Position numbers and translations under genes: made by a program. From the sequence record OP729297.1: DNA of 64,000 bases; one strand, given 5' to 3'. Positions 16,199-43,283 of this stretch are shown here, in pieces (the stretch's first letter is position 1; every line of letters begins with the position of its first letter). The notes under the pieces were generated by a model. The model did not search any database and had not been told where the DNA came from. It worked only from the letters and a program-made list of their open reading frames with translations.

Positions 16199-16206
16199 TT
16201 ACGCCC

Positions 16207-24892: not shown

Positions 24893-25630
24893 TTAGGTAC
24901 GGCGCAGCAGATAGCCCTTAATAAGAGAGCGCATAGTGTGCTCGTGCGCAGTCTTTTCAATACCCCATGCGCCTGCAAGACTAAGCAGTTCTTCCTTAGT
25001 CAGGAGGTCAACTTCTTTGAGGGCGGCATGGTTAGGAAGGCTTTCGAAGCGTTTAACCATTTCGCCAACAACATCGACGAGTCTGACAGGAACATCAGGG
25101 TTAAGACCGTAGTGTTCACACAGAGCTTCCTGCAATTGCTCCGCATCCATGTCAGCAGCTTTGCCTTTTGTACCAAGACCTTCATCTGCAAACATCTGCA
25201 CCAGAGTGGCTTTGTCCGCACAAAGAATTGAGGTGCGCAGATTATCCAGCTCCTGTATGTCGAGATCTTCGTCATCCATTTCAGGCACAGGCTGGGATTC
25301 GTCACGCGTCAGGCTGCGGTACTCGGCATACACATCTTTATCCTGAGTGAACGGATAATCGTCTTGCATACCATTAGCAACCCACTGCTCGGCAGTTTGC
25401 AGATACTGGCCATACGTTATCAGCTCCTGACCAGTCAGACCTTCGATCAGCTTTGCTTCCATCAAAGATGCTTTGCTTACCAGTACGCACTGGAGTGCCT
25501 GGAGTTGTGTGCTGAAACTTACGACACACAAGTAACGGTCACTAACAGGCAGGACGCGGTACATTTGCTCACGGATTTTTTCCATGAGATTAAAATAGCG
25601 GTTGATTTGTTCAGACAGTTTCTGAGTCAT
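24893..25630 (-). CDS. Hypothetical protein with repeated helical module(s)
   Basis: Contains DKATLVQMFADEGLGTKGKAADMDAEQLQEALCEHYG; start MTQKL. Confidence 0.7.
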   Translation of the reverse strand: MTQKLSEQINRYFNLMEKIREQMYRVLPVSDRYLCVVSFSTQLQALQCVLVSKASLMEAKLIEGLTGQELITYGQYLQTAEQWVANGMQDDYPFTQDKDVYAEYRSLTRDESQPVPEMDDEDLDIQELDNLRTSILCADKATLVQMFADEGLGTKGKAADMDAEQLQEALCEHYGLNPDVPVRLVDVVGEMVKRFESLPNHAALKEVDLLTKEELLSLAGAWGIEKTAHEHTMRSLIKGYLLRRT

Positions 25631-26096
25631 GATCGCAATCCCCATTGCAGACGTGTTTAGTTTCGATATGCAGCACTTGAGGCTGAGTGAGAAGTTTGAA
25701 GCCACCAGCGTGGTCAATCAGGTTGCGACACTCACGCTCCAATGCTTCTCGTTGAGCATGTTCCATAACAACAATACGGAACGCTTCGACACATGCAGGG
25801 AGGTCGTTACGGAGCTTGACGTCATTCAGCAGGCCGTTATCGGATGCAGGTATTTGACCCATGCAAATTTCAGCCCAATACTTCTCTGCCTTATCGAGAG
25901 CTTGTTTCAGCAGAGGTTCATTGACGGCATTTGAGATCACGTTAGCAGCACACAGCGTTTTGAGAGAACGAGCAAGACGAGCACCAGCTTCAAGGCGTAG
26001 CGTCATCAGATCGTAATAGGAAGGTTTTTCTGGAGCTTGTTTTGACGGTCGAGTATCGTCAGGCAGGTCGTCGTTAAGCAGATGTTCGGCAGACAT
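25611..26096 (-). CDS. Hypothetical protein
   Basis: 161-aa ORF after GAGGT. Confidence 0.7.
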   Translation of the reverse strand: MSAEHLLNDDLPDDTRPSKQAPEKPSYYDLMTLRLEAGARLARSLKTLCAANVISNAVNEPLLKQALDKAEKYWAEICMGQIPASDNGLLNDVKLRNDLPACVEAFRIVVMEHAQREALERECRNLIDHAGGFKLLTQPQVLHIETKHVCNGDCDHDSETV

Positions 26097-26123
26097 GGCA
26101 TTACCTCAAAAATTCGTGCAGAT

Positions 26124-26160
26124 AAGACAAAAGGGCAAACGCTCGTCAGCGCTGCCCTTT
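26124..26160 (-). terminator. Rho-independent terminator
   Basis: Minus strand AAAGGGCAGCGCT-GACG-AGCGTTTGCCCTTT then TGTCTT, just after the H1-like gene. Confidence 0.75.
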
Positions 26161-26193
26161 CGATCAAGTGACCGCTAGTGCGCGATTACTTGC

Positions 26194-26712
26194 TTATTCC
26201 ATTTCGAAGTCGAAGTCTTCTTCTTGTTTTTTCTGCTTGCCGCCTTTGGCTTTTTTATCGCCTTTCACTTTCTTGGCAGCTTTGTCTGCTTTAGCAGGCT
26301 TAGCGGATTTTTCGGCTTTAGCTTTTTTATCAGCTTTGGCTGGCTTTTCAGCTTTCGCTTTTTTGTCTGCTTTAGCAGGCTTAGCGGCTTTCTCAGCTTT
26401 AGCAGGTTTTTCTGCTTTAGCTTTCTTGCCAGCTTTTTCAGCTTTAGCAGGCTTCTCAGCTTTTGCTTTCTTAGCAGCTTTTTCTGCTTTAGCAGGCTTA
26501 GCGGCTTTCTCAGCTTTCGCTGGTTTAGCAGCTTTAGCTGGAGCAGCACCGTCAGCAGACAGAGCTTCAACCTGAGCGGTCAGACCGGCGCGGCGCTGTG
26601 CGATCGCTTCGGCTTCTTTAGTCAGGCTGGCAGCAGTTTTAACCAGATTTTTTTCAGATTTGTCCAGGGCACGGATTTCTTTGTTCAGGCCGCTGATTGC
26701 TTTCTTAGACAT
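26194..26712 (-). CDS. Histone H1-like / AlgP-like basic repeat protein
   Basis: N-terminal coiled coil, then about eight KPAKA(E/D)K repeats, acidic tail EEDFDFEME. Confidence 0.8.
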   Translation of the reverse strand: MSKKAISGLNKEIRALDKSEKNLVKTAASLTKEAEAIAQRRAGLTAQVEALSADGAAPAKAAKPAKAEKAAKPAKAEKAAKKAKAEKPAKAEKAGKKAKAEKPAKAEKAAKPAKADKKAKAEKPAKADKKAKAEKSAKPAKADKAAKKVKGDKKAKGGKQKKQEEDFDFEME

Positions 26713-26792
26713 ACGATTTCCTTACTTTGTTTTTGATGCGGCGTTTTCACCGCTGGATGAAAAGATAAATTTGTTCAGGTTTGTTTCCCTGT

Positions 26793-26827
26793 AGACGTAC
26801 ATTATTATATTCAACATACGTCTGCAA
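26793..26827 (-). promoter_or_regulatory. Sigma70-like promoter overlapped by an inverted repeat
   Basis: TTGCAG-17 nt-TAATGT; arms AGACGTA (26793-26799) and TACGTCT (26817-26823). Confidence 0.5.
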
Positions 26828-26928
26828 GGAATTTTGAAACTTTTTACAAAAATATTCGAAAAGTTTTCTCGAATATTTGCCCCTCGCTCATTCACAGAGA
26901 ACTAGAGGGGCGCGCCGGTCAGAAGATA

Positions 26929-27732
26929 TTACTCGTCGTCTTCGTCTTCGTCTTCATCGTCGAAGTCTTCGTCGTCTTCGTCTTCATCTTCGTCTTCGTC
27001 GTCTTCACCGCCGAAGTGACTTTCGCAGAGTTCGCGCAGTTCATCTTCGTCCATCTTCTTCGCCTTTTTGGCGGTGGCCAGCTTGTGTTCGATTACCAGG
27101 GCGCGAAGTTCATCTTCGTCGAGAGAGTCGAGGTCGAGTTCGTCATCTTCGTCCTCGTCTTCATCTTCGTCGTCTTCTTCGTCTTCGTCGTCCTCTTCAT
27201 CTTCATCTTCGTCGTCGCCGTCTTCGTCGTCTTCGTCGTCCTCTTCATCAGAGTCTTCGTCGTCTTCGTCTTCGTCGTCGCCGTCTTCATCTTCGTCGTC
27301 CGAGTCGTCTTCGTCCTCGTCTTCGTCGTCCTCTTCTTCGTCTTCGTCCTCTTCGGACTCGCCGCCCAGGTTATCGTTCAGCAGTTCGCGCAGTTCATCT
27401 TCGTCCAGCGCTTTCGCTTTCTTAGCGGTAGACAGCTTGGCTTTGACAACTGCTTCGCGCAGAGTGTCTTCATCGACGCCGGAGATATCCAGTTCGTCTT
27501 CTTCTTTCACAGCAGCGACGATTTCAGCGACGGTTGGTGCCTTAGGCTTTTTGCCTTTAGCAGCTTTACCGCCTTTGTCAGCTTTAACAACTTTGCCACC
27601 AGACACGGTCAGGCCGGCAGAGGTGAGCAGCGCGGCGATTTCTTTGTCGGTCGCGTTTTCCACTACAACACCCAGCATTTTAGCCAGAACCAGAGATGCG
27701 GTGTTAACGGTTGCTTTAGCAGCTTTAGCCAT
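26929..27732 (-). CDS. Basic N-terminus / polyacidic protein with two copies of the ~45-aa module
   Basis: K/A-rich first ~70 aa; module copies at ~27361-27495 and ~27007-27141; long D/E tracts. Confidence 0.8.
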   Translation of the reverse strand: MAKAAKATVNTASLVLAKMLGVVVENATDKEIAALLTSAGLTVSGGKVVKADKGGKAAKGKKPKAPTVAEIVAAVKEEDELDISGVDEDTLREAVVKAKLSTAKKAKALDEDELRELLNDNLGGESEEDEDEEEDDEDEDEDDSDDEDEDGDDEDEDDEDSDEEDDEDDEDGDDEDEDEEDDEDEEDDEDEDEDEDDELDLDSLDEDELRALVIEHKLATAKKAKKMDEDELRELCESHFGGEDDEDEDEDEDDEDFDDEDEDEDDE

Positions 27733-27779
27733 GATATTTATTTCCTGTTTGATTAGAAGCGATGTTGCTTCAATTAAGA

Positions 27780-27847
27780 TTTACAGATTTCGAGAGACAG
27801 GCAGCGAGAACATTTTATCTCGCTGCATACTTAATGTTTACAGATTT
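27780..27847 (-). promoter_or_regulatory. Tandem AAATCTGTAAA motifs (candidate second promoter class) flanking a hairpin
   Basis: Copies at 27780-27790 and 27837-27847 around GCAGCGAGA-TAAAATGT-TCTCGCTGC. Confidence 0.5.
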
Positions 27848-27881
27848 CAGAAAGTCAGTTAAAAGTCTTCGTCAGACTTTA

Positions 27882-28427
27882 TTACTTTTTTACTTTCTTC
27901 ACCAGCTTCGCAGGCTTGTCTGCTTTGTCGCCTTTCTTAGCTTTGGTTGGAGCAGCGGTGCCGTACTTCTTAGCGGCCGCGTTTTCGTTTACAGTAGGAC
28001 GAACGTTGAAGCCAGGCAGAGCGGTGTTGATGTGAATCACTTCGCCGGTTTCGACAGAGGTTGCGTGAATCATGGCGCCGACGTATTTAACGGTGAAGCC
28101 TTTGTACTCACGAACCGGCGCGTTAACCAGAGCAGTAACACTACCGTGCTGACCGGCATCGCCCAGGATAGACAGGATTTGGTTCGGACCGAAGGTTGAG
28201 ATGATCTGCGCAGAAGAACCGTGGCCTTTTTTATGGCGGATGGTCACGCTGTTATCGGTGCGGTCAGTAATGAAACCAATCAGCTCAACAGCCTGAACTG
28301 TTTCGATCAGAATGTCGTGCGGCAGTTCAGCAGGCTTCACTTTAGAGGTGCTAATGGAACCAGATTTTTTAGCGATGCGAGAAGCCAGGGTAGGTGCCAG
28401 TGAAGTGCCTTTAGTTACTTTAGCCAT
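27882..28427 (-). CDS. Hypothetical basic protein
   Basis: 181 aa from MAKVTKG; Lys-rich tail. Confidence 0.75.
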   Translation of the reverse strand: MAKVTKGTSLAPTLASRIAKKSGSISTSKVKPAELPHDILIETVQAVELIGFITDRTDNSVTIRHKKGHGSSAQIISTFGPNQILSILGDAGQHGSVTALVNAPVREYKGFTVKYVGAMIHATSVETGEVIHINTALPGFNVRPTVNENAAAKKYGTAAPTKAKKGDKADKPAKLVKKVKK

Positions 28428-28526
28428 TTGTTTAATGCTCCGGGATTTATAAAGTGTGAGCGTATCGCTCGGTTCGAACTTCAATTAGTGTTTACAGTTT
28501 CGATTGCAGGTAACTTTTACAGATTA

Positions 28527-29357
28527 TTAAAAGCTATCACGAATCAGATGCGTACAAATTTTCAGAAGTGTTTCGCAGAACAATTCTTCGTAATCATCGT
28601 CATCTTCGAGATGGTCAATAGCATCGCTCTCAAATGCGATAGGCAACCAGTCGAAGGCCTGACAAATGTTACGTGCGGCGAAGCCCATGTGGGCAGAGTT
28701 ATTCTTCGCCTCCCACACCCAATGTAACATCTTACGTGACTGTTCATACTGGGTGTCTTTGAGGAACAGGTCGATGTTCGCTCGGATGTAATTATTGAGT
28801 TCCCCCAGCAGCGCAGCGCTTGCAGGAGCGTCGGCACCAACAGCAGAACAATACATTGCGACAGAGCGATACAGAGAAGGCTGTTTGATTACCACGTCGG
28901 TGCGGTTCAAATCAGCAAGCGCTCTGGCCACTTTGTTCGTTTCACGGTTTACAGAACCGTGTGCGAGTTGCTGTACGACATTGTGATAGTGGCTAATGCC
29001 AGCACACATTATCATATGCAGAGCAAACGGCAGCGGATTCGCTTGCTTCTGTTTACTCTTTACAGATTCGTTTTCAGCTTGCAGCTTTTTAAGCTCGGCT
29101 GTTTGTTCGTTGCAGAAGCCAACCACTTCTTTAATGCGTTCATCGCGCAGTGCGATTTCAACGGCGTGTTGGCGTACTTTACGTCTGAGTGCGACACGCA
29201 GCACTGTGCTGCGGCTTACTTCATCCTCTAAGACGTTCTCCACATCTTTCTTATCACCAATAGCTTCTTCAAGCTCGTTGGTCAGTTCGCGGATTTTATC
29301 GTCACGGGTACTAATCATCTGTACGATGTTAGCTTCGTGGTCTACTTCTTGTGTCAT
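28527..29357 (-). CDS. Hypothetical coiled-coil protein
   Basis: 276 aa with heptad N-terminal half. Confidence 0.75.
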   Translation of the reverse strand: MTQEVDHEANIVQMISTRDDKIRELTNELEEAIGDKKDVENVLEDEVSRSTVLRVALRRKVRQHAVEIALRDERIKEVVGFCNEQTAELKKLQAENESVKSKQKQANPLPFALHMIMCAGISHYHNVVQQLAHGSVNRETNKVARALADLNRTDVVIKQPSLYRSVAMYCSAVGADAPASAALLGELNNYIRANIDLFLKDTQYEQSRKMLHWVWEAKNNSAHMGFAARNICQAFDWLPIAFESDAIDHLEDDDDYEELFCETLLKICTHLIRDSF

Positions 29358-29372
29358 GTTTACAGATCCCCA

Positions 29373-29402
29373 AGAAAAGTAAGCGGCCCTTTCGAGCCGC
29401 TC
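29373..29402 (-). terminator. Rho-independent terminator
   Basis: AGCGGCTC-GAAA-GGGCCGCT followed by TACTTTTCTT. Confidence 0.8.
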
Positions 29403-29414
29403 AATCAGACGATA

Positions 29415-32400
29415 TTACTCGTCGTCGCCTTCGTCTTCTGCGGACTCGTCTTCTTCGTCCTCAGGAGAGCACAGCACCAGCACGGTCAGGTCACCGCCGT
29501 TGTCGAACGTTGCAGCAGCCAGACCACCAGACAGCACAGCCAGCGGCAGGTCACGAGAGTCCAGCGCACTTGCTACTTCGATCACGTCTTCGGCATCGTC
29601 GAAGTTCGCAGCGTCAGCAGCAGAGTAGGACTGTACGTTTTCCATGGCGCGCAGTGCGGTCAGCGCTTCGAACAGGCGGTCGTTGTTCAGCAGGGCAGCG
29701 GACTCCATAGTGAAGCCAGCGTACACTTTGATACCTTCGACTGTTTCAGCCAGAGAGATAACGCGGTTAACAGCAGCCTGCACCAGACGTGAAACTTCGG
29801 AGTCACCCCAGAAGCCTGGGACAGCTACGTTCATCACGGTGGTGTGCAGCGCAACGTGTGCGGTGTCAACCTGAACAGGACGAACGCGAGACTTAGCACT
29901 GTACAGGCTAGCCAGCGGCAAATGATCACCCTGCATTTCGTCCAGACCGTCTTCGTCGAGATAGCCCATCTCAGCAGCCTGAGCCATTTCTTCTTCGTCG
30001 ATGAAGTCACCAACAATCAGACCCGCTTCGGTAGGGTCCATACCGTCTTCAATGCGGCCGGCGTACAGGTTCGCATCGAGGTCCTGCTTGATGGTCTGCT
30101 CCAGGCTTTCCGCCCACGTTTCAATATCAAACGTTTTAGGGTTAGCGAGGAAGCGAGTAGTACCGACGCGCTCCAGAATATCCAGAATAGACTGAGCTGG
30201 CAGGTGCATAGAGCCAGGCGCTTTACCAGGTTTACCCAGATTGAACGGGTAGCGGTAGTTGAAGCCGCCAACGTCAGACAGTTCGCTTTCAATCGGACCG
30301 TAGGTGTTACCGTCAGTCAGAGTGAAGTTGATGATCAGCGTCTGGTCCATATCGACAGACAGCATCGGGCCGACGGAGTTGGTGGTGTCAACGTCTTTAA
30401 CGAATTTCAGATGATCGTTAGTTTCAGACTCAGCAGCCTGCTCGGCGCTGTCTTCTTCGTCTTCTTCTTCGTCATCCACGAAGTCGCCTTCTTCATCTTC
30501 GGCTTCTTCGTCGCTTTCGCCTTCGTCTTCCTGATCGGCAGATTCGTCATCGGCCAGGAACTCAGGCAGCACAGCCAGCAGCGCGTCAACAAACGACAGA
30601 CCGTCTTCGTCAGCAATCTCTGACAGGTCAACACCGTAGTTGGTTGCGATTTCTTCAACAGCCGCGAAGTCATCTTCGCTACCGCCGTTAATGATCGCTT
30701 CGATCATTTCGTCAGCAGTTTCGCATTCATCGACCAGAATGCCCAGGCTTTCTGCTACGTGCTGAATTGTAGCGTCGTCGTACTGGCGCAGCAGCTCAAC
30801 AACTTGCTCGGCGTTAGAGGTTTCAACTTCTTCGGCTTCAACTTCTTCGTTGGCCTGACCCTGGATGCGGGTGAACGCTTTCATTACCTGAACGATGGTC
30901 ATCGTTGAGGCGTCTTCGCCCATAGCAGTAACAGCGGCAGCGCGTTGTTCGGCAGTCAGCATACCGCCAGCAAACTGGAAGTAGTCGAGAGGATCGGTAA
31001 CAGCGTCGATCTGGTGCTGCACTTCGTCTTCGTCTTCGTCTTCTTCTTCGCTGTCTTCGGACTCGTCTTCTTCCGATTCTTCTTCATCGGATTCTTCTTC
31101 GTCTTCTTCGTCTTCTTCGTCAGAAGACAGAGCGGCCAGCATGTTAGGGCAGGCGATTTCGTGCTCTTGCAGAGCGCCGACGAAGGTGTTCAGCAGTTCA
31201 ATCATTTCCTGCTCGGTTGCACCTTCAACAACTTCCAGCAGTTTCGCAGTCAGAGTTTCAACGGTGTCTTTCTTCATCACCGGAATATCCTGAGTGCGGA
31301 TCAGAACTTTCAGACCGGCGCGATCAAGCTCTTCGGCGACCAGCACAGAAGCGAGGAACTGAACAGCATCGAAGTCTTCTTCTTCGCCATCTTCTTCCTC
31401 TTCTTCTTCGTCTTCCGCAGAGTCATCGGCGGAGTCGTCACCGCTTTCGCTTTTTTCCAGCCAGATGGCCTGCTCAGTTTCGAACGATTCGCGGATGCCG
31501 TCTTCGTTCATCGCGTCCAGCGTATAGCCGATAGCTTCAAGCGCTTCGGACATTTGTTCGATGCTCAAGGTTTCAGCCTTGTAACCAAACAGGTCCGTGC
31601 CGGCCGCGACTTCTTCTTCGCTGCCTTCGTTCTGATCTACAACTTCGTCTTCGGCATCGAAGTCTTCGTTCAGATTAACCGGCGTTGCGTTAGTAGGTTG
31701 TTTCACGTTCAGTTCTCCGTTATTTGGAATTGCAGCAACGATCTCGCCGCCAATGGTTTGCATGATGAAAGTACGCACAGCGCCGGACAGCACAGTAACA
31801 GGATTGGCCGGCAACGCGCTGTAGTCGATTACTGCTTTATCGAAAGCGCCGTCAGTTTCATCAATGCTTGTGATATTTACAGTTTGCAGATTTTCCACCT
31901 GCGCGGCCAATGCGCGGATGTACGGACCAGCTTTGCTTTCTTCGACAATCGAGATGGAGTGAACGCCAAACTCGGCTGCGAGGTCCGCGAGATCTGTTTC
32001 GCCAGCACTGAACAGAGCAAGCGACAGACTGCCGTGCATCTCCGACACTGCTTTATTTACAGTATACGAAACGATGACTGCATCGCCTTCACCCACTTTG
32101 ATGCGCTCGTCGATACGAGTAGGCACACCGTTGTTTGGATGCAGGATGTAGTACGCGCTGTTTTGGTCAGTCGAAGGACCAGATGCGCGTTCGATCAGAT
32201 TTGGCAGACGGTCCATCACTTTGCCTTCGATCTGCTTTTCGTGCAGTTGCTCACTGGCGCTCATATAAGAGAAGCGGCCGTGTGCGTTAAGCGAAGTCAA
32301 AACAACGATGGTACATTTGTTGATGTGGCCCGACTCAGACGAGTTAGCGCGACGTTGTTCATCAGCGATCTGGCGTTGAGTCTCAGAACCGAATGTTGCA

Positions 32401-32426
32401 GCAGCGCCCAGGTTATTATTAGACAT
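29415..32426 (-). CDS. Large polyacidic protein (1003 aa)
   Basis: Several D/E tracts separating short helix-extension-helix-like segments. Confidence 0.8.
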   Translation of the reverse strand: MSNNNLGAAATFGSETQRQIADEQRRANSSESGHINKCTIVVLTSLNAHGRFSYMSASEQLHEKQIEGKVMDRLPNLIERASGPSTDQNSAYYILHPNNGVPTRIDERIKVGEGDAVIVSYTVNKAVSEMHGSLSLALFSAGETDLADLAAEFGVHSISIVEESKAGPYIRALAAQVENLQTVNITSIDETDGAFDKAVIDYSALPANPVTVLSGAVRTFIMQTIGGEIVAAIPNNGELNVKQPTNATPVNLNEDFDAEDEVVDQNEGSEEEVAAGTDLFGYKAETLSIEQMSEALEAIGYTLDAMNEDGIRESFETEQAIWLEKSESGDDSADDSAEDEEEEEEDGEEEDFDAVQFLASVLVAEELDRAGLKVLIRTQDIPVMKKDTVETLTAKLLEVVEGATEQEMIELLNTFVGALQEHEIACPNMLAALSSDEEDEEDEEESDEEESEEDESEDSEEEDEDEDEVQHQIDAVTDPLDYFQFAGGMLTAEQRAAAVTAMGEDASTMTIVQVMKAFTRIQGQANEEVEAEEVETSNAEQVVELLRQYDDATIQHVAESLGILVDECETADEMIEAIINGGSEDDFAAVEEIATNYGVDLSEIADEDGLSFVDALLAVLPEFLADDESADQEDEGESDEEAEDEEGDFVDDEEEDEEDSAEQAAESETNDHLKFVKDVDTTNSVGPMLSVDMDQTLIINFTLTDGNTYGPIESELSDVGGFNYRYPFNLGKPGKAPGSMHLPAQSILDILERVGTTRFLANPKTFDIETWAESLEQTIKQDLDANLYAGRIEDGMDPTEAGLIVGDFIDEEEMAQAAEMGYLDEDGLDEMQGDHLPLASLYSAKSRVRPVQVDTAHVALHTTVMNVAVPGFWGDSEVSRLVQAAVNRVISLAETVEGIKVYAGFTMESAALLNNDRLFEALTALRAMENVQSYSAADAANFDDAEDVIEVASALDSRDLPLAVLSGGLAAATFDNGGDLTVLVLCSPEDEEDESAEDEGDDE

Positions 32427-32453
32427 TTGTGTTATCTCCTCAGATAAGGTTGT

Positions 32454-34562: not shown

Positions 34563-35791
34563 ACGCTGGCATCCAGTTCAGAGGTTTTGCCCAGGGTCAG
34601 GTTGAACGTGCTGTCAACATTAGCATGGGCCATCACACATTCAGCACCGTCTTTGTCGATGAAGACAGGACCCGTCATATCGCAAGTCAGGAACATCAAC
34701 TCAACGCCGTTCGGCTTGTAGACGATCAGGCCGCGCTTCACGTCAGAAGATTTGATACCCAGCTTTTTGGCGATGACTGCTTTCGATGCTTTCGAATGCT
34801 CTTTCAGCGCTGGCATATCTTTCTTGCCTGGCTTAATGAGCTTGATCGTCATCTTGCGAATACGCTTGGTGATTTCTTTTTCCGAAGCGTATGTAGGCAC
34901 GGCAAGTTTATGCTTTGCCTTCTTTGATTTCACTTTCGGGTTCTCGATGGACTTATCGAGAGACAGCTTGAGGTTGCCCATCAGAGTTTGAATGGCAACA
35001 TCGTAGAATTTCACGTCGAGGTCAAGCGCACTAAGTACGCGCTCAATCTGCGAACGATTCAACGTCAGGGCGCCGTCTTGAATCAGACGTTTCAACGCGA
35101 CAGGCATCTGCTTGATGAACGTGTCTTGCGTTACGCTGGCGTTCAGGCGATTCACTGCGGTCTGTGCAGCTTTGCGGCCCATGTGTTTGATAACACCAGC
35201 ACCGCCGTGTTTCTTCACATCTTTCCAGTCCATGTCAAACGCTTCGCTCAACATCTTGCGGCGGTCTTTCGTATTCGCGTCGGCGATGGTTGCGTCGATG
35301 ATGCCAGCCAGTTCAGCTTTACGATCAACTTTATCAGACGGCAGCATGTCGATTTCGTCTTTCGACGCGGCGACTTCTGCTTTACGCTCTTTCTTGGTGC
35401 GCTTGTCTTTGTTACGTTCGCGGGTAGCTTTCACGCCGCCTTTCACTTTCGCAGTTTTCACAGCAGGCTTGCCTGTCTCAGGGTCGATGTAGACCAGATT
35501 GCCGAAGTCAGGCTTGATAGTGTCAACGTCGATTTCGTCGTTGCGCAGATCTTTCTGCTGGCGCTTGTTCAGCTTAACGGTGATACCGTCAATCAGAACG
35601 TGCTCGGCTTTCGCATACGGCTGTTCGATCTCTTTCAGAGTTTTACCAGCAAGCACGATACGCTTCACCGGAATCTGCGGACCTTTCGCGTCGGTGCTAT
35701 AACCGTTAGCGTTTACTTTGTTGATGAAAGTGGTGGTGCCATCCAGACGACGTACACGGGCATTCAACAGGTTTGCATTTGCGTTTGACAT
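34559..35791 (-). CDS. Hypothetical Lys-rich protein
   Basis: ~410 aa from MSNANA after GAGGA. Confidence 0.75.
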   Translation of the reverse strand: MSNANANLLNARVRRLDGTTTFINKVNANGYSTDAKGPQIPVKRIVLAGKTLKEIEQPYAKAEHVLIDGITVKLNKRQQKDLRNDEIDVDTIKPDFGNLVYIDPETGKPAVKTAKVKGGVKATRERNKDKRTKKERKAEVAASKDEIDMLPSDKVDRKAELAGIIDATIADANTKDRRKMLSEAFDMDWKDVKKHGGAGVIKHMGRKAAQTAVNRLNASVTQDTFIKQMPVALKRLIQDGALTLNRSQIERVLSALDLDVKFYDVAIQTLMGNLKLSLDKSIENPKVKSKKAKHKLAVPTYASEKEITKRIRKMTIKLIKPGKKDMPALKEHSKASKAVIAKKLGIKSSDVKRGLIVYKPNGVELMFLTCDMTGPVFIDKDGAECVMAHANVDSTFNLTLGKTSELDASV

Positions 35792-35879
35792 AGTGTGATT
35801 CCTCAATCAGCTTAGTTGTCAGAGATGCGGCTCTGTCTGAACCGCATCTTACTTCAAGTTTTCGTATTACAGGTCGATC

Positions 35880-37508
35880 TTATTTCAGCAGCTTGCGCAG
35901 TTGTGCGGCTTTCATGTTCTCAGCTTTACGCACAGTGGTCAGGCCGGCTTCAACAACGCGGTCACGCAGTTCGTCTTCGGACAGGTCTTCCAGATCTTCG
36001 GACGGCAGGTCGTTAAACTCGAAGTCGTCTTCTTCTTCGCCGTCTTCTTCTTCGCCATCTTCTTCATCTTCGAAGTCGTTTTCTTCACCGTCTTCTTCTT
36101 CACCGTCTTCTTCTGAATCGTCAGCTTCACCGCTATCGATCACAGGGCTAAAGTCGGTCAGAGTTTTGATATCGGCTTTGCTATACACCAGCACGTTATC
36201 ATCTTCGTCTGCATCATCAGACAGGTCGATAACCAGCAGACCGCCTTTGCTATCGCAGCCGAGGTAAGCGAAAGTAGTTTCGCCGTCAGTTAACATCAGG
36301 CCTGGGGCCAGAGCTTCTTCATCAACACCGAAGCGTTCAGCCAGCGCAGCGTGATACTTGGCGGTTACTTTCTTGTTGACCAGTTCGAGTTGATCAGCAT
36401 CGACTGCGACGAACTCGTATTCGGCATCTTGCGGTTCGCCGTCTTCTTCTTCGCCATCGTCTTCTTCACCGTCTTCTTCGTCTTCGGAGGATTCTTCCTC
36501 TTCTTCTTCCTCCTCGATTTCATCTTCATCTTCAATTTCATCTTCTTCCTCTTCTTCGCTTTCATCAGCGACGATTTCGAAGTCGGCCAGTTTGTCGGCA
36601 CCGAATGATTTGAAGCCGTCAGTGTCGGCGCTATACATCAGCGCTTTGCCTGCATGTTTCGCAGACTCACCGACGAACACGAACTCAGTACCTTCGCTGG
36701 TCAACACGGTACCAGGCAGCAGGTCGTTCGCGTCTTCAAGGTCGAAGGCCGCTTTGATTGCTTTCGCCAGCACTTTGCCAATCTTCTTGGCAGCGAGCTT
36801 GGCCGCACGTTTCGCAACAGCTTCGTCCAGCTCAGGCGCAGCAGCAACAGTTTTAACAGGCGCAGCGTATTGCAGGTTCAGCGTAATCTGGAGCACGTTA
36901 CCTTCAGGCGCATACTCAGCACCGTAAGTAACGTCCAGTGCGTTAGCGATCGGCGTTTTGTTATCAGCGCACACTTTTGCAACGTCAGAGTTAAGCACGT
37001 AATGGGCCAGACGTTGAGCAACTGCATCGGTCAGCGACTCGTCTACAGCTTCGATCTCAACAGCAGGCTTGGCTTTGCCGCCTTTGATGATAGCGTGAGC
37101 CAAATTCTGGTAATCTTCGGATTGCTCTTCGGAAGATTTACGACGAACTTTCGGCTCTTTGTCTTTCGACGGCTTCGCGTCTTTCTTGCCAGAAGTTTTC
37201 TTTGTACCAGCTTTCTTGCCAGACGCTTTCGGCGCGGCAGCTTCTTTCTTGGCAGTTTTCTTACCAGACGCTTTCGCATCTTTCAGCTTAACATAACCTT
37301 CGCCTGTATCTTCCAGCTGGCTCATGTTCATGCGCTCGATTTCGCGGAAGTGAGAGCCTTCTTTGATGATGCAGCGGGTGGCGATACGCTTGGTCAGGCC
37401 CTTCACTTTATAGCCAGACGCGATTGCATCTTCGATTTTAGATTTGGTGCCGTTCAGCAGGACGATAGTTTTGCCAACCAGGTTAGTGTTAGTTTCGATA
37501 CGTGCCAT
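35880..37508 (-). CDS. Basic/polyacidic protein with C-terminal module copy
   Basis: K/A-rich segment, D/E tracts, ends LEDLSEDELRDRVVEAGLTTVRKAENMKAAQLRKLLK. Confidence 0.8.
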   Translation of the reverse strand: MARIETNTNLVGKTIVLLNGTKSKIEDAIASGYKVKGLTKRIATRCIIKEGSHFREIERMNMSQLEDTGEGYVKLKDAKASGKKTAKKEAAAPKASGKKAGTKKTSGKKDAKPSKDKEPKVRRKSSEEQSEDYQNLAHAIIKGGKAKPAVEIEAVDESLTDAVAQRLAHYVLNSDVAKVCADNKTPIANALDVTYGAEYAPEGNVLQITLNLQYAAPVKTVAAAPELDEAVAKRAAKLAAKKIGKVLAKAIKAAFDLEDANDLLPGTVLTSEGTEFVFVGESAKHAGKALMYSADTDGFKSFGADKLADFEIVADESEEEEEDEIEDEDEIEEEEEEEESSEDEEDGEEDDGEEEDGEPQDAEYEFVAVDADQLELVNKKVTAKYHAALAERFGVDEEALAPGLMLTDGETTFAYLGCDSKGGLLVIDLSDDADEDDNVLVYSKADIKTLTDFSPVIDSGEADDSEEDGEEEDGEENDFEDEEDGEEEDGEEEDDFEFNDLPSEDLEDLSEDELRDRVVEAGLTTVRKAENMKAAQLRKLLK

Positions 37509-37564
37509 GATTAATACTCCTCAGTATATGTTTTTGTGTGTGACGCACTATTGCGTCTGAATCT

Positions 37565-37618
37565 ATTATAGCATAGGTGGCCGTCAGATAACAACCACGA
37601 TTTTGTCCAGTTTTCTGC
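37565..37618 (-). promoter_or_regulatory. Conserved phage promoter P3
   Basis: GCA GAAAA CTGGAC, 34 nt, TATAAT preceded by TGC; followed by hairpin GACGCA-ATAG-TGCGTC. Confidence 0.8.
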
Positions 37619-37670
37619 ATACTTCGCAGATAGCAGGGCAGCTATATTTCACTGCCCCGCTCGTTATTGC

Positions 37671-38480
37671 TTATGCGCGGTAGTAGCTATACAGCTTCAC
37701 TACGTCATTGTCAGACAGCTTGACGGCAGCTTCTGGCTTGATGATTTGCGCAGCTACCAGATACTTGCGCATCTTAGCAACAGCAGCGGCGTTATCATCT
37801 TCTTCTTCGTCAGATTCTTCTTCGTCGCCATACTCGACGTTCTCAGGAATCTCCTCTTCATCTTCTTCGAGGTGCGCACCGTCAAGCAGAACTTCTGTTC
37901 TGGTTGTCACGGCAGCAGACGTTTCGCCAATACGATCAGAACTGATATCAGCACGAATCACTTGCGTACTGTTTTCAGGCAGTCGAACGAAAATCCAATC
38001 AGGAGAATCGTGTTCGACATACACCCACTGACCGAACTCTTTGCAGAGGTCCATATCGGTCAGAATATCGTTAACCAGCGACGGGATTTTAGTGAAGCGC
38101 GTATTCTTGAGGTCACGCAAGGCGCCTTCAATCTTACGACGAGACACTTTGATGATACCCGTAGCAGCCGCTTCCGCGTCAGTCGTAACCTTCCATGCTG
38201 ATAAGATTGCGTGAACCAGATTGAACACGCGTTCCTCGTCACGAATTTTCGTCTGCGTGTCCGGGAGACGTTCGCCCGTAGCTTTCGATTTGTAACCGTA
38301 GCCAGGAGGCAGTTGACGTGGTTTAGCGGAAGACGGCCCGCGTGGTGTTGGGCGTTTCTTCTCACCTTCGTTCTCAGGACGCTCGCTAGGCTTTTTGCCT
38401 TTAACGCGCTTTGGCGAGTTCTTAGCGGCGCGAGCGCGGGAGAATTTGTCTTCTGTCTTAGGGCGTGAAGTATTAGGCAT
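37671..38480 (-). CDS. Hypothetical protein with basic N-terminus and acidic C-terminus
   Basis: 269 aa after AGGA. Confidence 0.75.
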   Translation of the reverse strand: MPNTSRPKTEDKFSRARAAKNSPKRVKGKKPSERPENEGEKKRPTPRGPSSAKPRQLPPGYGYKSKATGERLPDTQTKIRDEERVFNLVHAILSAWKVTTDAEAAATGIIKVSRRKIEGALRDLKNTRFTKIPSLVNDILTDMDLCKEFGQWVYVEHDSPDWIFVRLPENSTQVIRADISSDRIGETSAAVTTRTEVLLDGAHLEEDEEEIPENVEYGDEEESDEEEDDNAAAVAKMRKYLVAAQIIKPEAAVKLSDNDVVKLYSYYRA

Positions 38481-38676
38481 ATCTATTTCCTTTGCGGTTT
38501 AGCATGAGAGCACGGCAGGCGGAAACCGCGTAAAGCCCGACGCGCTCAAAGGGTATCGAACCCTTTTTAAAACAGCCTCACAGGAAGCAGCTTTAAAAAG
38601 GACCGTGTGCCCGGGAAAAGATAAACACACGGTCAAGACGTTATAGGAACATCACAGAGAGAACATGTCTCGCTGT
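38481..38676 (-). ncRNA. Candidate structured 5' leader / small RNA
   Basis: ORF-free ~195 nt after P4 with stems GACCGTGTG/CACACGGTC and CTTTTTAAA/TTTAAAAAG, and T-loop-like AAAGGG-TTCGATA-CCCTTT. Confidence 0.35.
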
Positions 38677-38682
38677 CTCTAT

Positions 38683-38735
38683 ATTGTATCACGGACGCTG
38701 TTTTGAGACAATCCTCATTTTGTCCAGATTTATGC
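38683..38735 (-). promoter_or_regulatory. Conserved phage promoter P4
   Basis: GCA TAAAT CTGGAC, 33 nt, TACAAT preceded by TGA. Confidence 0.8.
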
Positions 38736-38951
38736 TTAGAAGCGACGATCTGCCAGAAGCATTCGAACCAGCGCTTCGCGGCTGTAGTTGCTTGCGTCGT
38801 CATCTTCGTCCACAAGCTCGTTAGCTTCTACAGCGTCGGCCAGCTCGTCGTCTGTCCAGTCGTCGTATTGAGCGATTTGCTCATTATAGCGTTGTTCTTC
38901 GGCGGCAGCTATCTGGCCGTTCACTTCATCTTGTGTAGGACATCGGCTCAT
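38736..38951 (-). CDS. Small acidic protein, module-like
   Basis: 71 aa from MSRCPTQ; YDDWTDDELADAVEANEL...SREALVRMLL. Confidence 0.65.
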   Translation of the reverse strand: MSRCPTQDEVNGQIAAAEEQRYNEQIAQYDDWTDDELADAVEANELVDEDDDASNYSREALVRMLLADRRF

Positions 38952-38955
38952 TTGA

Positions 38956-39369
38956 TTACTCCACACGATTGCATTCGCAATGCTCTTTATGGCAGGAGAA
39001 GCAGACTTCATCTTCACCTTCGTCGAGGTTCTGCCAACCGTTTTCATCGGTACGGCCATCATCGTTGAGATTGCCTGGTCGTTCTTCCGCAGTGTCGAGG
39101 TCTTCATCATCGAAGTCATCGTCTGCATCAGCAACACGTACAGCTTTATGCTCACCGAGAATCGCTTCGACCTCAACTTCTACCTCAGGCGCCATATCTG
39201 TCATCAGCACACAGAACTCGTCGAACGTCAGACCTATCTGGCTTAATGCCGTTTCGATCAGCTTTTTGCCTTCGTCTTCTTCGTCGCGTCCGAAGACTTC
39301 AATTACACCAGCGAGTGCACCACCCATGAGAATGACCTGTGCATCTTTACTTGCTTCGTTGAACTTCAT
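38956..39369 (-). CDS. Acidic hypothetical protein with Cys-rich tail
   Basis: MKFNEA after GGAGG; ends CFSCHKEHCEC. Confidence 0.7.
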   Translation of the reverse strand: MKFNEASKDAQVILMGGALAGVIEVFGRDEEDEGKKLIETALSQIGLTFDEFCVLMTDMAPEVEVEVEAILGEHKAVRVADADDDFDDEDLDTAEERPGNLNDDGRTDENGWQNLDEGEDEVCFSCHKEHCECNRVE

Positions 39370-39510
39370 TAACAGCCTCCTGTTTGGTTTTAGGTACTTT
39401 ATGCAGCGCACTAATCAGTACGCTTCAAAAAGGACCCGCGTCGTCACGCCTCTGCGATGGGGCGCCTCATTGGGGGTGAGCATTTCTGGACGGGCGAGCC
39501 AAACTGATTG

Positions 39511-39702
39511 TTAGTGCATGTTCGTCAACTTGATTGTGATAACGCGGCCTCGCTTGGTTGTTTCCACTTCCCGCTTCTTGTATGTGAGACACAGACAATC
39601 AAGCGTGAACGTTAAGTCGGGCACTGCGTCTTTCTGGCGTTCTTCAATAACAAGCTCGCCGCGTTGTCGCAACTCTTTGATCATTTCGTTAGTGGTTTTC
39701 AT
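39511..39702 (-). CDS. Hypothetical protein
   Basis: 63-aa ORF coupled to upstream stop. Confidence 0.6.
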   Translation of the reverse strand: MKTTNEMIKELRQRGELVIEERQKDAVPDLTFTLDCLCLTYKKREVETTKRGRVITIKLTNMH

Positions 39703-40412
39703 TAGAAGTATTTGTCCTTCGCATCAGGTGCGAGTGGCAGTTCAATGTCAGGGTCAACGCCAACTTCAAGGCTATGTACTTCCTGAACCTGATCATCGTT
39801 CAGAGTGATTGCCCAGTCTTCGGCGCGATATCCCCAACTGCAAATCATCATACGCTCGATTTCGGGGTTAGCATCTTCCATGTCGAAGTCTTCTTCATCG
39901 TCGATACATTCATCGTCGTTAAAGTCGTCCTCGTCGTCGATGGCGTCATCATCCTCCTCATACCCGTTATGAGCATCCTCATACAGGGGATGTTTTGGTG
40001 CGAGGGCCACAGCCAGCTTGTCTGCGATTTCAGGGTCAATGTGAATCTCACTGATCATCGGACCGTGTTCATCATACATCGTGCGAATATCGACAGGTAT
40101 GGCAAGACTGGCCGCAATACCCTGCGAGCGAAGCATCAGGCACATGTTGTATCGGTTCATGATAGTATCAGTTGATACCAGCTCACGGGTGAGCGAGACA
40201 ACTAAGTGCTCTACGGTACGGGAGCCGTCACGCCATACAACATCGACTTCTTTCAGACCGTGCTCTTTAACAACTGCCTGGAGAGCTTCCAGAAACTTTC
40301 TAGGTCTGAAAGAGGCGAGCACTTCGTTTTCACGAACGAGTGCAAATACTTCAGGAGCCAGCTTACTGCGTTTCAACATAAACGGTGAGAGTTTCATGTT
40401 ATTTAGCCTCAA
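39702..40412 (-). CDS. Hypothetical protein
   Basis: 236 aa with acidic C-terminal third. Confidence 0.7.
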   Translation of the reverse strand: MRLNNMKLSPFMLKRSKLAPEVFALVRENEVLASFRPRKFLEALQAVVKEHGLKEVDVVWRDGSRTVEHLVVSLTRELVSTDTIMNRYNMCLMLRSQGIAASLAIPVDIRTMYDEHGPMISEIHIDPEIADKLAVALAPKHPLYEDAHNGYEEDDDAIDDEDDFNDDECIDDEEDFDMEDANPEIERMMICSWGYRAEDWAITLNDDQVQEVHSLEVGVDPDIELPLAPDAKDKYF

Positions 40413-40863
40413 CCAGATTCATGACGTAGTTCTTTTTGGCGAAGCGGAAGCAAACTTTGCTAACCGTGCCAGCAAGACCATCGTAGCCGATCATAAACAG
40501 GCGGCCAGAACAAATCGCAAGGTCCATTAGCGAGTGACCATCTTCGTTCGCTTCGGCTGTAGCGAGAATCGCCTCACAGATTTCCATCTGCTTGGCATGA
40601 TCGATATCGTTCGCAACAAACTCAGAACCTTCGGCAACTTCGTTCAAATTGAACTGGAGTTTGCATGGACGGTTGTTGTGTACGAAACGCATTTCAGGAA
40701 TCGGACCACCAAGCTGGTCACACACGGTCAGGTACAGGCGAAGGCCTGCGGCTGCCACGTCAATCCACTCAGGGGTCAGTTCAATAACTTTCTGGACAGC
40801 GGCGTCCATCATGCGGTCCTGCAATTCGATATCAGATGGGGTTGCTTGAGTTTCGTTCATCAT
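40399..40863 (-). CDS. Hypothetical protein
   Basis: 154 aa after GAGGAG, first gene downstream of P5. Confidence 0.75.
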   Translation of the reverse strand: MMNETQATPSDIELQDRMMDAAVQKVIELTPEWIDVAAAGLRLYLTVCDQLGGPIPEMRFVHNNRPCKLQFNLNEVAEGSEFVANDIDHAKQMEICEAILATAEANEDGHSLMDLAICSGRLFMIGYDGLAGTVSKVCFRFAKKNYVMNLVEAK

Positions 40864-40916
40864 TTCGTTGTCTCCTCAGACATATGTTATAAAAGCGCAG
40901 CACAAGCTACGCTTCT

Positions 40917-40969
40917 ATTGTATCATAGGACGCTCTCAGATACTACCGCTGTTTTGTCCAGTTTTATGC
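40917..40969 (-). promoter_or_regulatory. Conserved phage promoter P5
   Basis: GCA TAAAA CTGGAC, 33 nt, TACAAT preceded by TGA; followed by hairpin AAGCGTAGC-TTGT-GCTGCGCTT. Confidence 0.8.
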
Positions 40970-41269
40970 TTACCAGAGCTTCTTGCGGAAGTCTGTCTTT
41001 GTCCACAGCCACGGTCTGTCTGGGTCTGTTTTGACTTCATGACTCAGAGCCAGAACACCCTCGTCTGTCAGAGCGCGTAATTCACGTTCCTCTATCTCAG
41101 AGTATTCTTCGCGGCTGCGGTAGCGCAGGATATGCGCCTCGAATTTATCGAGTGCTTCCTTGCTTGCCAGATAGACAAACCCATCTTCTTTCGGCCCTAA
41201 GAATGCGCGGCGTTCGTTCATCTTCAGGACGATAGCGACATTCGGTACCAATGTCAGTTTATCAGTCAT
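40970..41269 (-). CDS. Hypothetical protein
   Basis: 99 aa after GAGGTG. Confidence 0.7.
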   Translation of the reverse strand: MTDKLTLVPNVAIVLKMNERRAFLGPKEDGFVYLASKEALDKFEAHILRYRSREEYSEIEERELRALTDEGVLALSHEVKTDPDRPWLWTKTDFRKKLW

Positions 41270-41277
41270 AGATCACC

Positions 41278-41712
41278 TCACTGCATATTAGCCGGGATTT
41301 CAGTACGCTTGAACGGGAAGTTAGCAGCCACTGGGAAGACATGGAGGTTAAATCCGTTCTCCTCTGCTACACGTTTGATTGTGTGCAGATGGTTCAGGTA
41401 GTCGTGGTCTTCGACGTGGTTTAATACTTCTTCGTCGGCTGCGGACGCTATGAGGAATAGCGCACTTGTGGTGACTGAGCCATGATCAGTCCAGAGTAGT
41501 TCAGCACGAACACAGGCCTCAGGATTCTCCTCAGCCAAAGCGAAGGTAATCTTATGTTGAAGTTTAGCCATAACGATTGCGGTCGCATAAGCCAGTGACA
41601 TAGCCGATGCGCCACGATCATCACGCGCAGCATCAGTCAGCTTCTTGACCAGCTCGTCGTTCATAGCCAGTTGAATACGATTTACTACCAGAATGTTTTG
41701 TTCGAATTTCAT
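41278..41712 (-). CDS. Hypothetical protein
   Basis: 144-aa ORF. Confidence 0.7.
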   Translation of the reverse strand: MKFEQNILVVNRIQLAMNDELVKKLTDAARDDRGASAMSLAYATAIVMAKLQHKITFALAEENPEACVRAELLWTDHGSVTTSALFLIASAADEEVLNHVEDHDYLNHLHTIKRVAEENGFNLHVFPVAANFPFKRTEIPANMQ

Positions 41713-41747
41713 TTTTGTTCCCTACAATGTTAGGTATGGTTGGACAA

Positions 41748-43283
41748 TTAACGCAGTGCGTGTTTAATTAGTTCTTTCAGGTATTCTGCATCACGAGGAT
41801 AGCGATCACCATCTTTCATTTTTGTCAGAGCGTAAGCGATAGCCTCCAATGAAATTTGAGGCAGTTTATCCAGCAGACCAGCTTCGACTGCATTTGTCAG
41901 AGCACTTATTATGCTTTTACGCACATCACGCACGACGGTTTTCTTGTTTGAGTACAGGTCCCCAGCATATGTAGCGCGAGGAACTTTAGCTTTCATCAGA
42001 GTCTTACGAATCGTTTCGTAGCTGATATTGCGGTCATCACTGACTGCTGGGAATTTACGAGGCTCACGCTCCTGTTCCGGCTCGTCCTCCTCAACTTCAT
42101 CATACCCGAAATGATCTTCACAAAGCTCACGTAACTCAGAGATATCAAGTGATGCGGCTTTCTTGGCTGAGGCCAGCTTATACTGGATGACCAGATCTAA
42201 CAGACCTTCTCTGTCCAGTTTATCCAGATCAACATCACCATCTTCTGATTCTTCGTCTGCATGTGGGTCGAAGTTATCTGCACACGTAACCATGCCACGA
42301 TCGATCTTGTATACGCCAACTTCATTTTGTACATGACGCTGCAAGCTAATCAGCGCGGCACGTACCAACGATTGCTGGTACTCAAACGTTTCTTCGTTGA
42401 TCGTAATCCACGTATAGTCCGGGTACCAACCATAAATAAAGTTGACCACGAATTGCGGATTATCAATCAGTTCAGCCATTTTATCTTTCGCGTCGTGTGC
42501 AAAGATCAAATGCGTTGCATAGTAGCAAGTCAATTGATAACGATTGAAGTTACGACCAGGATGCGGGATATCACCGCGAATACGACACTGACGCAACAGG
42601 TCATTCAGAGTTTGGTCCATCATTTCCTGCGTCTTACCGTTAGCCATCATACGCTTCGTAAGATCACGAATGCGTTCAGGGCGATAGTCAGCAGGAATTT
42701 TTTCGTTGTCGTCCAAGCCGATTGCGTTATGCGTGTACTTGTATTTATCGTCGAAGTCTTCGAGCCAGCGATCATGTAGTTTGATCAGACCTTCTTTATC
42801 TTCACGCGATACGCGCATTGGGCCTACACCAAACGACAGTAACATGCTACGCATTTCAGGCTCTGGCAGATCAGCGAACCAAGTGATCTTTTGTTCTTCA
42901 CGACAGGTTGCCTTGAGATGAATCTTGATTATGCGGCGCAGACTATCTTCAATGAACAGACCATTGATTGGCTTGAAGCCTTCGTGCGCACTCTCAAGCA
43001 TCTCATATGGCAGGAACGTTTTGCAGGACTTGCCTACATGATGGTGAAGCATTAGGTCATTGTTATCATCGAACGACCAAACTTCCAGCGTAGGGTCAGA
43101 AGCAAAACCCCAGTAAGTGTTAGTGCAGAGCGTACCTTCTTTCTGACGCTCAATGATTTCCCGCAGCACATCGCCAGTGAGAACCATCTCACGCCCCATG
43201 GCATTGTAGAAATAAAACAACGGCTTACCTGTCAGGGCAGCGTCACGAACAAGCAGTAAGTTTTGGCGAAGATCGAATGACAT
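41748..43283 (-). CDS. Hypothetical protein carrying one copy of the ~45-aa module
   Basis: 511 aa; VDLDKLDREGLLDLVIQYKLASAKKAASLDISELRELCEDHFG at ~42105-42236. Confidence 0.75.
   Translation of the reverse strand: MSFDLRQNLLLVRDAALTGKPLFYFYNAMGREMVLTGDVLREIIERQKEGTLCTNTYWGFASDPTLEVWSFDDNNDLMLHHHVGKSCKTFLPYEMLESAHEGFKPINGLFIEDSLRRIIKIHLKATCREEQKITWFADLPEPEMRSMLLSFGVGPMRVSREDKEGLIKLHDRWLEDFDDKYKYTHNAIGLDDNEKIPADYRPERIRDLTKRMMANGKTQEMMDQTLNDLLRQCRIRGDIPHPGRNFNRYQLTCYYATHLIFAHDAKDKMAELIDNPQFVVNFIYGWYPDYTWITINEETFEYQQSLVRAALISLQRHVQNEVGVYKIDRGMVTCADNFDPHADEESEDGDVDLDKLDREGLLDLVIQYKLASAKKAASLDISELRELCEDHFGYDEVEEDEPEQEREPRKFPAVSDDRNISYETIRKTLMKAKVPRATYAGDLYSNKKTVVRDVRKSIISALTNAVEAGLLDKLPQISLEAIAYALTKMKDGDRYPRDAEYLKELIKHALR

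Follow-up and report, generated by a model that had tools for sequence, protein, structure and literature searches.

A repeated ~45-residue module with a predicted helix-extended-loop-helix fold in a cassette of hypothetical proteins of an Erwinia jumbo phage

We analysed a 64,000-nucleotide stretch of sequence record OP729297.1 (hereafter the window), which is 100% identical to Erwinia phage vB_Ea_2910A (2910A), an Alexandravirus and jumbo phage of the fire-blight bacterium with a genome of 262,854 bp. Window positions correspond to record positions minus 124,000. Between 24.8 and 43.3 kb of the window every gene lies on the minus strand and is annotated as encoding a 'hypothetical protein', and the standard genetic code sufficed for the gene models. 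Within this cassette we observed that four genes, g24893, g26929, g35880 and g41748, share a module of ~45 amino acids (aa). These carriers sit just upstream of two genes for topoisomerase II subunits (20754–22403 and 22725–24755, both minus strand).

Two copies of the module occur in g26929 (26929–27732, minus strand), a 267-aa protein annotated as coding sequence (CDS) WAK44474.1. Here a small N-terminal helical part and a Lys-rich linker are followed by module a (27364–27492, minus strand; residues 81–123; net charge −4), a poly-Asp/Glu (poly-D/E) tract, module b (27010–27138, minus strand; residues 199–241) and a poly-D/E tail. The protein is a full-length member of phrog_30618 (E=1.2e-90, residues 4–267 on profile positions 2–269), and two-module orthologues are found in Alexandra, Yoloswag, Yersinia phage fHe-Yen9-02, Dickeya phage JA11 and a 222-kb metagenomic phage (contig L044). 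In g41748 (41748–43283, minus strand; 511 aa) the module (42105–42233, minus strand; residues 351–393) lies in an acidic linker between a C-terminal domain and a conserved N-terminal domain (residues ~1–320). Orthologues of the protein were identified across the clade by tblastn. ESM Atlas gave no usable lead for this protein.

The two remaining carriers hold one module each. The 542-aa product of g35880 (35880–37508, minus strand) is basic in its N-terminal region and contains several acidic tracts, and its last ~40 residues form the module (35883–36002, minus strand; residues 506–542). It is a full-length member of phrog_33433 (E=3.8e-211), and the C-terminal module is also kept in the metagenomic relatives P0008, P0014 and P0015. 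The protein appears to contain an internal duplication of ~50-residue segments (about 265–315 and 395–450), each after an acidic tract, and its distant orthologue P0008 has one extra internal module. Both phrog_33433 and phrog_30618 are unannotated whole-protein families whose profiles include the module. Finally, g24893 (24893–25630, minus strand) is annotated as the 245-aa CDS WAK44471.1, and a TTG-start open reading frame (ORF) extends to 25717. The protein starts with an alpha/beta part, continues with an acidic linker that holds the module (25106–25231, minus strand; residues 134–175 of the CDS, 168–204 of the long ORF) and ends in a SAP-like domain. This copy is the most divergent of the five.

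The homology of these copies was assessed with profile and pairwise comparisons. Modules a and b of g26929 were found with independent E-values (i-E) of ~1e-25 and ~2e-27 by hidden Markov model (HMM) searches. When 728 six-frame ORFs of the window were searched with an HMM seeded solely by g26929-type sequences (2910A, Alexandra, Yoloswag, fHe-Yen9-02 and JA11), the g41748 module was detected at E=3.6e-16 and the g35880 module at E=5.6e-8. Excluding each carrier's own family from the seeds led to the same outcome: the g35880 module was retained at E=1.1e-8 after removal of all g35880-type seeds, and leave-one-out models found the g24893 module at E=1.6e-5 with extended seeds and at 8.4e-5 with g26929-only seeds. 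The PHROG profiles cross-match independently, with g41748 matching phrog_30618 (1.2e-13) and g26929 matching the C-terminus of phrog_33433 (9e-10).

The similarity was also compared with composition-preserving shuffles. Smith-Waterman scores of all ten copy pairs exceeded those of 2000 shuffles with Z=5.7–22.8, and between 0 and 2 of the 2000 shuffles reached the observed score. The highest value belonged to the g41748 module paired with g26929 copy b (63% identity, Z=22.8), and the divergent g24893 module scored Z=5.7–7.9 with the other copies. The similarity therefore survives compositional correction, a check that the preliminary description of this DNA had set for itself. With the modules masked, no other mutual similarity was detected among the four carriers. 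We conclude that the repeated ~45-aa module is a real homologous unit.

All five stretches quoted in the preliminary description were located in the genes to which it had assigned them. Its count of at least five unrelated proteins is too high: the five homologous copies lie in four otherwise dissimilar carriers. Two profile scans of the whole 262.8-kb phage genome, one of them with a 59-sequence HMM, revealed no sixth copy, leaving exactly five in four proteins. Looser copies had further been suggested in g38736 (38736–38951, minus strand) and in g29415 (29415–32426, minus strand), a 1003-aa protein with several poly-D/E tracts, and HMMs built from 3, 5, 18 and 59 sequences did not support either. 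In g38736 just the acidic lead-in and helix 1 match, at E ~0.2–1.4 even with the 59-sequence HMM, and g29415 has no match at E≤20–50 to any module profile; both were rejected as family members. The N-terminus of g26929, which hhalign aligned over 18 columns with P=0.03, was likewise not counted as another copy.

We next describe the anatomy of the module, as derived from 59 non-redundant family sequences. The hydrophobic core is nearly invariant, with Leu13 in 57 of 59 sequences, Leu22 in 49, Ala28 in 55 and Leu37 in 56, and further core positions are 17, 18, 32, 40 and 41. An acidic lead-in carries conserved hydrophobic residues at positions 5 and 8, and a conserved acidic N-cap run stands ahead of each main helix. 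Positions 25–31 form a conserved Lys-rich loop that is predicted to adopt a short middle helix. The window copies carry a net charge of −2 to −6; the family mean with flanks is −7.6. The module is usually next to acidic tracts, as first described: 39 of 47 family instances have a 25-aa flank with at least 40% D/E. In addition, 13 of the 47 finish no more than 12 residues from the C-terminus of their protein.

AlphaFold2 (AF2) modelling of the module from a 14-row alignment (A3, with g26929 copy b as its first sequence) yielded a mean predicted local distance difference test (pLDDT) score of 85.9. In the model of this 47-residue construct a short turn is followed by helices at positions 10–19, 25–30 and 33–44. 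Predicted models were compared exhaustively with 48,161 PDB representatives using VIA-align. For the module, the top rows were dominated by SAP domains, Rho N-terminal domains, LEM domains and the C-terminal domain of T4 endonuclease VII, and matches of the helix-extended-loop-helix (HeH) class had Z 3.5–5.9 and a root-mean-square deviation (rmsd) of 1.9–3.2 Å over 38–44 residues. Its neighbours also include the SAP domains of Hcc-1, MANF, FAN1 and MKL1, and the LEM domain of LAP2. The module is thus predicted to adopt the HeH fold seen in SAP, Rho-N and LEM domains, and the assignment to this class in the preliminary description is supported by the AF2 prediction and the VIA-align neighbours.

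To compare folds between copies, g24893 was folded whole from an orthologue-only alignment (A5), which is independent of the other module copies. The resulting model has helices at 140–149, 155–159 and 163–174 over the module, repeating the helix, short helix, helix pattern of g26929 at a pLDDT of 65–69, so that the two carriers point to one fold and not to different ones. The same model contains a second HeH/SAP-like domain at the C-terminus (24896–25042, minus strand; residues ~197–245; pLDDT 83–89). In VIA-align this domain matched DEK (Z 6.7), the PIAS1 SAP domain (Z 6.1, rmsd 1.9 Å, 49 aa), the C-terminus of T4 endonuclease VII (5.9) and the SAP domains of SLX4 and Ku70 (5.5 each). In hhalign it aligns in register to the module profile (P=0.007), and its loop is 5 residues shorter; it falls outside the module HMM family, shares its fold class and looks like a canonical SAP-like domain. 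It is kept in all g24893 orthologues, even those without the shared module.

At the sequence level, the module reached the threshold of no family in Pfam, NCBIfam or the PDB sequences, a PDB sequence profile search with the module returned nothing significant, and the whole carrier proteins matched nothing in Pfam at E≤0.1. Literature on SAP/HeH modules in phages and on these phages contained no description of the module that we could find. The recurrent sub-threshold Pfam matches all belong to the HeH clan, namely SAP (0.011 and 3.6e-4), Ish1 (0.015 and 0.0033) and Rho_N (0.047). Together, recurrent structural neighbours and sub-threshold profile matches place the predicted fold in the HeH class at the level of the clan. 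Since no family exceeds its threshold and the sub-threshold matches are to the HeH clan only, we read the module as a new, phage-restricted sequence family with an HeH fold, and not as a member of SAP, Rho_N or LEM.

The closest likeness is to SAP (PF02037). The predicted model has the helix-extended loop-helix layout of ~35–45 residues that defines the SAP fold: both domains span ~40 residues, and in both an extended loop that bears Lys connects two main helices. The SAP domain of E1B-AP5 (1zrj) is the best small-domain fold match (Z 5.5, rmsd 2.1 Å, 42 residues, 24% identity), and is followed by those of SLX4 (7bu5, Z 5.0), PIAS1 (1v66, 4.5), 2do1 (4.3), 2kw9 and Tho1 (1h1j; both 3.8) and Ku70 (1jjr, 3.5). 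Both SAP and the module are attached to DNA-repair or replication proteins, often beside acidic regions. Unlike SAP, the module is net acidic and restricted to phages, and its loop exceeds that of SAP by ~5 residues and folds, in the model, into a short third helix. Against the Pfam cutoff of 23.9 bits, only one of the five window copies gave a SAP match, at E=0.011, and the best family member, P0019, scored 20.5 bits over 13 residues.

The other members of the class are related in a similar manner. The N-terminus of Rho (1a62, residues 1–45) shares the three-helix arrangement, the length and a bacterial setting (Z 5.0, rmsd 2.8 Å, 44 residues), and it also resembles the g24893 C-terminal domain (Z 5.4, rmsd 1.7 Å). 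In contrast to Rho, the module occupies C-termini or linkers, frequently as tandem copies, has poly-D/E flanks and is not followed by an OB-fold domain; one of 26 family proteins reaches E=0.047 with Rho_N. With Ish1 (PF10281, cutoff 26.6 bits), a window copy scored 16 bits (E=0.015) and P0025 reached E=0.0033. LEM (PF03020) and HeH (PF12949) were not reported for the modules by hmmscan at E≤10. LEM domains of emerin and LAP2 (7ndy, 2odc, 1h9f) are of the same fold class (Z 3.5–4.3, emerin 4.3), but they differ in loop length and charge, show no sequence match, and have a eukaryotic partner, BAF.

A phage counterpart is found in T4 endonuclease VII, whose C-terminal domain (1e7d, ~105–156) is a helical domain of the same size that ends a DNA enzyme; its residues 110–155 match the module with Z 4.0, and the same C-terminus matches the end domain of g24893 with Z 5.9. 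The modules of P0025 and P0019 match positions 46–103, the C-terminal half, of phrog_3281 'endonuclease VII' (E=4.9e-12 and 1.7e-4), and the window copies have no match to this profile at E≤0.01. In T4 endonuclease VII the C-terminal domain mediates dimerisation.

We then considered how the module is distributed among related phages. A tblastn search of 50,697 phage genomes found it solely in Erwinia, Dickeya and Yersinia jumbo phages. The two-module g26929 protein and the C-terminal module of g35880 are kept in all four related genera tested, and in L044 as well. The g41748 module, by comparison, varies as an indel: 2910A, AD1, SNUABM_3 and Alexandra have it, and it is precisely absent from SNUABM_28, whose protein is 83% identical overall, and from Y3 and SNUABM_7. 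Similarly, the alignment of g24893 orthologues (A5) shows the module in four relatives and its clean absence in two. Presence and clean absence among the orthologues of these two genes indicate that the module behaves as a cassette that is gained and lost inside acidic linkers. In this phage lineage g26929 and g35880 are old carriers, and g41748 and g24893 are lineage-specific gains. The 2910A copy in g41748 is identical to g26929 copy b at 27 of 44 positions, compared to 12–15 identical residues with its positional orthologues. Recent copying between the two at the DNA level was considered and rejected, with a nucleotide identity of 57%, a shared codon at 9 of the 27 identical residues and nothing to suggest a recent gene conversion.

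The whole cassette is also syntenic in the distant jumbo phage represented by L044 (positions 10001–21755). There, orthologues of g35880, g34559, g34182, g32454, g29415, g27882, g26929, g26194 and g24893 are followed by a GyrB-like topoisomerase II gene, and the g24893 homologue is a short protein without the module.

Beyond this clade, a HMMER profile search of 1.84 billion representative proteins gave 26 matches at E≤0.001, or ~24 after the removal of two false ones. The latter, P0020 and P0021, are archaeal HTH-repeat/HNH proteins with a partial match to positions 9–33 only, which we took as false positives. Several carriers belong to replication or recombination proteins. P0017 and P0025 are DUF669-type proteins (Pfam 2.6e-13 and 1.7e-5) that resemble single-stranded DNA-binding protein (SSB) and carry one to three modules at the C-terminus; P0025 has a further match to phrog_378 'single strand DNA binding protein'. 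P0009 has four modules and shares phrog_3724 with P0017, without a Pfam DUF669 match of its own; P0017 and P0009 each lie within a PolA / PD-(D/E)XK / AAA_24 block. On a 137-kb metagenomic phage contig, L026, a RecA_N (UvsX-like) protein (L026:8766-10337, plus strand) ends in one module (i-E 3.9e-8). The gene order there is SSB (phrog_15004), the two-module acidic protein P0016 and the RecA_N protein, with PolA and clamp-loader-like genes nearby.

Other carriers are linked to replication by their position. P0023 is encoded directly downstream of an SSB of the phrog_15004-type family, and P0018 lies beside a clamp-loader-like AAA protein. P0004 has three modules behind a 280-residue domain; a reading of this domain as a gp32-like SSB was unsupported by Pfam, PHROGs, NCBIfam, PDB sequences and tblastn, and was dropped. 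Proteins with 2–4 modules are common in the family. The remaining representatives are uncharacterised proteins, mostly metagenomic, and the names of ten family representatives (two 'hypothetical protein', the others unnamed) are not informative.

In the window, two conserved neighbours flank g26929. Upstream lies g27882 (27882–28427, minus strand), which encodes 181 aa with a Lys-rich tail and matches phrog_22271. The protein appears beta-rich, with basic tails at the N- and C-terminus, and ESM Atlas offered no usable lead. In L044 a g27882 homologue lies immediately upstream of the g26929 orthologue, and another stands just upstream of P0010, a distant two-module protein (E=6.6e-14). The slot that g27882 holds next to the two-module protein is filled by an SSB gene in two other phage contigs. 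Downstream lies g26194 (26194–26712, minus strand), which encodes 172 aa with Lys/Ala-rich repeats and matches phrog_38087. A coiled-coil-like N-terminus is followed by ~100 residues of short Lys/Ala/Glu/Pro repeats, which resemble the tails of histone H1 or AlgP, and by a short acidic-aromatic C-terminus. The gene always adjoins that of the two-module acidic protein, in L044 too (E=5e-20), and the unrelated contig L027 encodes an analogous protein of Lys-rich repeats in the vicinity of P0019, which has two modules. As a trio, g27882, g26929 and g26194 are retained in different genera, and also on contigs as distant as L029 and L044.

Charged extensions are also present on other proteins of this phage. 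Both topoisomerase II subunits have Lys-rich N-terminal extensions of ~20–45 residues before the conserved enzyme domains. Near-pure D/E tracts occur in just three ORFs genome-wide, two in the cassette of module carriers and the third in the SSB. This SSB is encoded outside the window (OP729297.1 204742–205983; L038:16742-17983, minus strand) and is homologous to the phrog_15004-type SSBs linked to P0023 and found in L026 (E about 1e-30). Its tail of ~145 residues alternates poly-Asp with poly-Lys/Ser blocks and has no HeH module.

What might the module do? It is a small domain with a conserved surface loop that is shuffled among unrelated carriers, and the simplest reading is therefore an adaptor that recognises one ligand common to its carriers. 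In other phages it is found in the tails of SSB-like and RecA-like proteins or in carriers placed between their genes, and we therefore infer that the ligand is at replicating or recombining DNA. On balance, we favour the reading that the module is a putative docking adaptor for the replisome or for the replicating DNA of the phage. The conserved Lys loop is the obvious candidate for the binding surface, and gain and loss as a cassette, together with fusion to SSB-like and RecA-like tails, would fit a putative 'docking tag'. The module would bring its carrier to replicating or recombining phage DNA by one of two routes. In the first, the basic loop would make a weak, direct contact with DNA; SAP domains of Ku70, PIAS1 and Tho1 bind DNA directly, and the Lys-rich loop is compatible with SAP-like binding, to which the net charge of −2 to −6 is unfavourable. 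In the second, the module would bind a replisome protein that is itself on DNA. HeH domains are known to do this, as the LEM domain docks to BAF and the SAP domain of SLX4 to MUS81, and LEM in particular sets a precedent for docking to a DNA-bound protein and not to DNA. The flanking acidic tracts may be self-repelling, flexible spacers, or may tune binding by competition.

Several observations weigh against a docking adaptor of the HeH class. A net acidic module within poly-D/E disfavours non-specific DNA binding, and docking to a protein, or a weak and tuned contact with DNA, appears at least as likely. No Pfam HeH-clan model reaches its cutoff on any copy. The SAP model has no match in the 262.8-kb phage genome at E≤10, and neither does Rho_N (PF07498, cutoff 24.9 bits); the controls responded in both searches. 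Foldseek of the module against the PDB returned nothing at E≤0.001. The g24893 model is of moderate confidence (mean pLDDT 66.5), and the absolute fold Z-scores of 4–6 are modest, as expected for a 45-residue helical domain; what counts for the predicted fold is the recurrence of one fold class among the neighbours. Lastly, the four 2910A carriers have no assigned function, and their link to replication comes from the gene neighbourhood and from carriers in other phages.

The main rival reading, unlikely but credible, is that the modules are multivalent 'stickers' in a charge-driven assembly. The acidic HeH proteins g26929 and g35880 would then combine with Lys-rich neighbours (g26194, the tail of g27882 and the basic N-termini of the topoisomerase subunits) into a chromatin- or condensate-like compartment around phage DNA. 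Contacts would be made via the basic loop and the acidic flanks, and the module would provide valency instead of one specific dock. The retention of the g27882/g26929/g26194 trio across genera and in L029 and L044 is consistent with such an assembly, as are the Lys-rich repeat protein near P0019 in L027, the frequent occurrence of 2–4 modules per protein and the location of two of the three near-pure D/E ORFs in the cassette, the third being the SSB. However, g41748 and g24893 hold one module in otherwise folded proteins, and the single-module tails of the L026 RecA-like protein and P0017 better fit a plain recruitment tag.

More speculative, and less probable still, is the idea that the module serves as the shared address label of a chromatin- or condensate-like organiser that the phage would encode for its replicating DNA. 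One HeH sticker would mark SSB, recombinase and poly-acidic scaffolds alike, both in jumbo phages of the PaBG/Alexandra group and in unrelated phages. Together with the neighbouring Lys/Ala-rich proteins that resemble histone H1, these might build a charge-patterned replication compartment, an analogue of SAP-domain/acidic chromatin factors such as DEK.

We consider it quite improbable that the module is an intramolecular regulator, which would cap its own carrier or fold back on it and gate DNA binding without a shared external target. Precedents are E. coli SSB, T7 gp2.5 and RecA with their acidic C-terminal tails, and the module does occur at the acidic C-terminal end of SSB-like and RecA-like proteins, a place known for autoinhibitory tails. 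Nevertheless, the same module is found on at least six unrelated carrier types, and its surface Lys loop is conserved across them, which argues for a common ligand. Moreover, g26929, P0011 and P0016 are little more than modules and acidic sequence, with no obvious domain to regulate. That there is no real domain at all, and that the similarity is a by-product of charged, low-complexity, helix-prone sequence beside poly-D/E, is extremely improbable: the region is compositionally biased and the Pfam and PDB sequence searches gave nothing significant, but shuffle Z-scores reach 22.8, bias-corrected HMMER E-values go down to 1e-16 across paralogues, hydrophobic positions are near-invariant, the AF2 fold is confident and indel boundaries in orthologues are precise.

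In conclusion, the module is a phage-specific, new sequence family of a well-known fold class, and a docking function is plausible, though putative. The domain is undescribed in Pfam, NCBIfam, PHROG annotation and PDB sequences as searched, and it offers an entry point to four proteins so far called 'hypothetical', whose conserved and unstudied cassette neighbours the topoisomerase genes in jumbo phages of Erwinia, Dickeya and Yersinia. Because the module is small and predicted to fold alone, work on its binding, localisation and structure should be straightforward. Its ligand, once found, would show how these phages gather replication and recombination factors, and would put to the test an organising role of the acidic/basic cassette for phage DNA.

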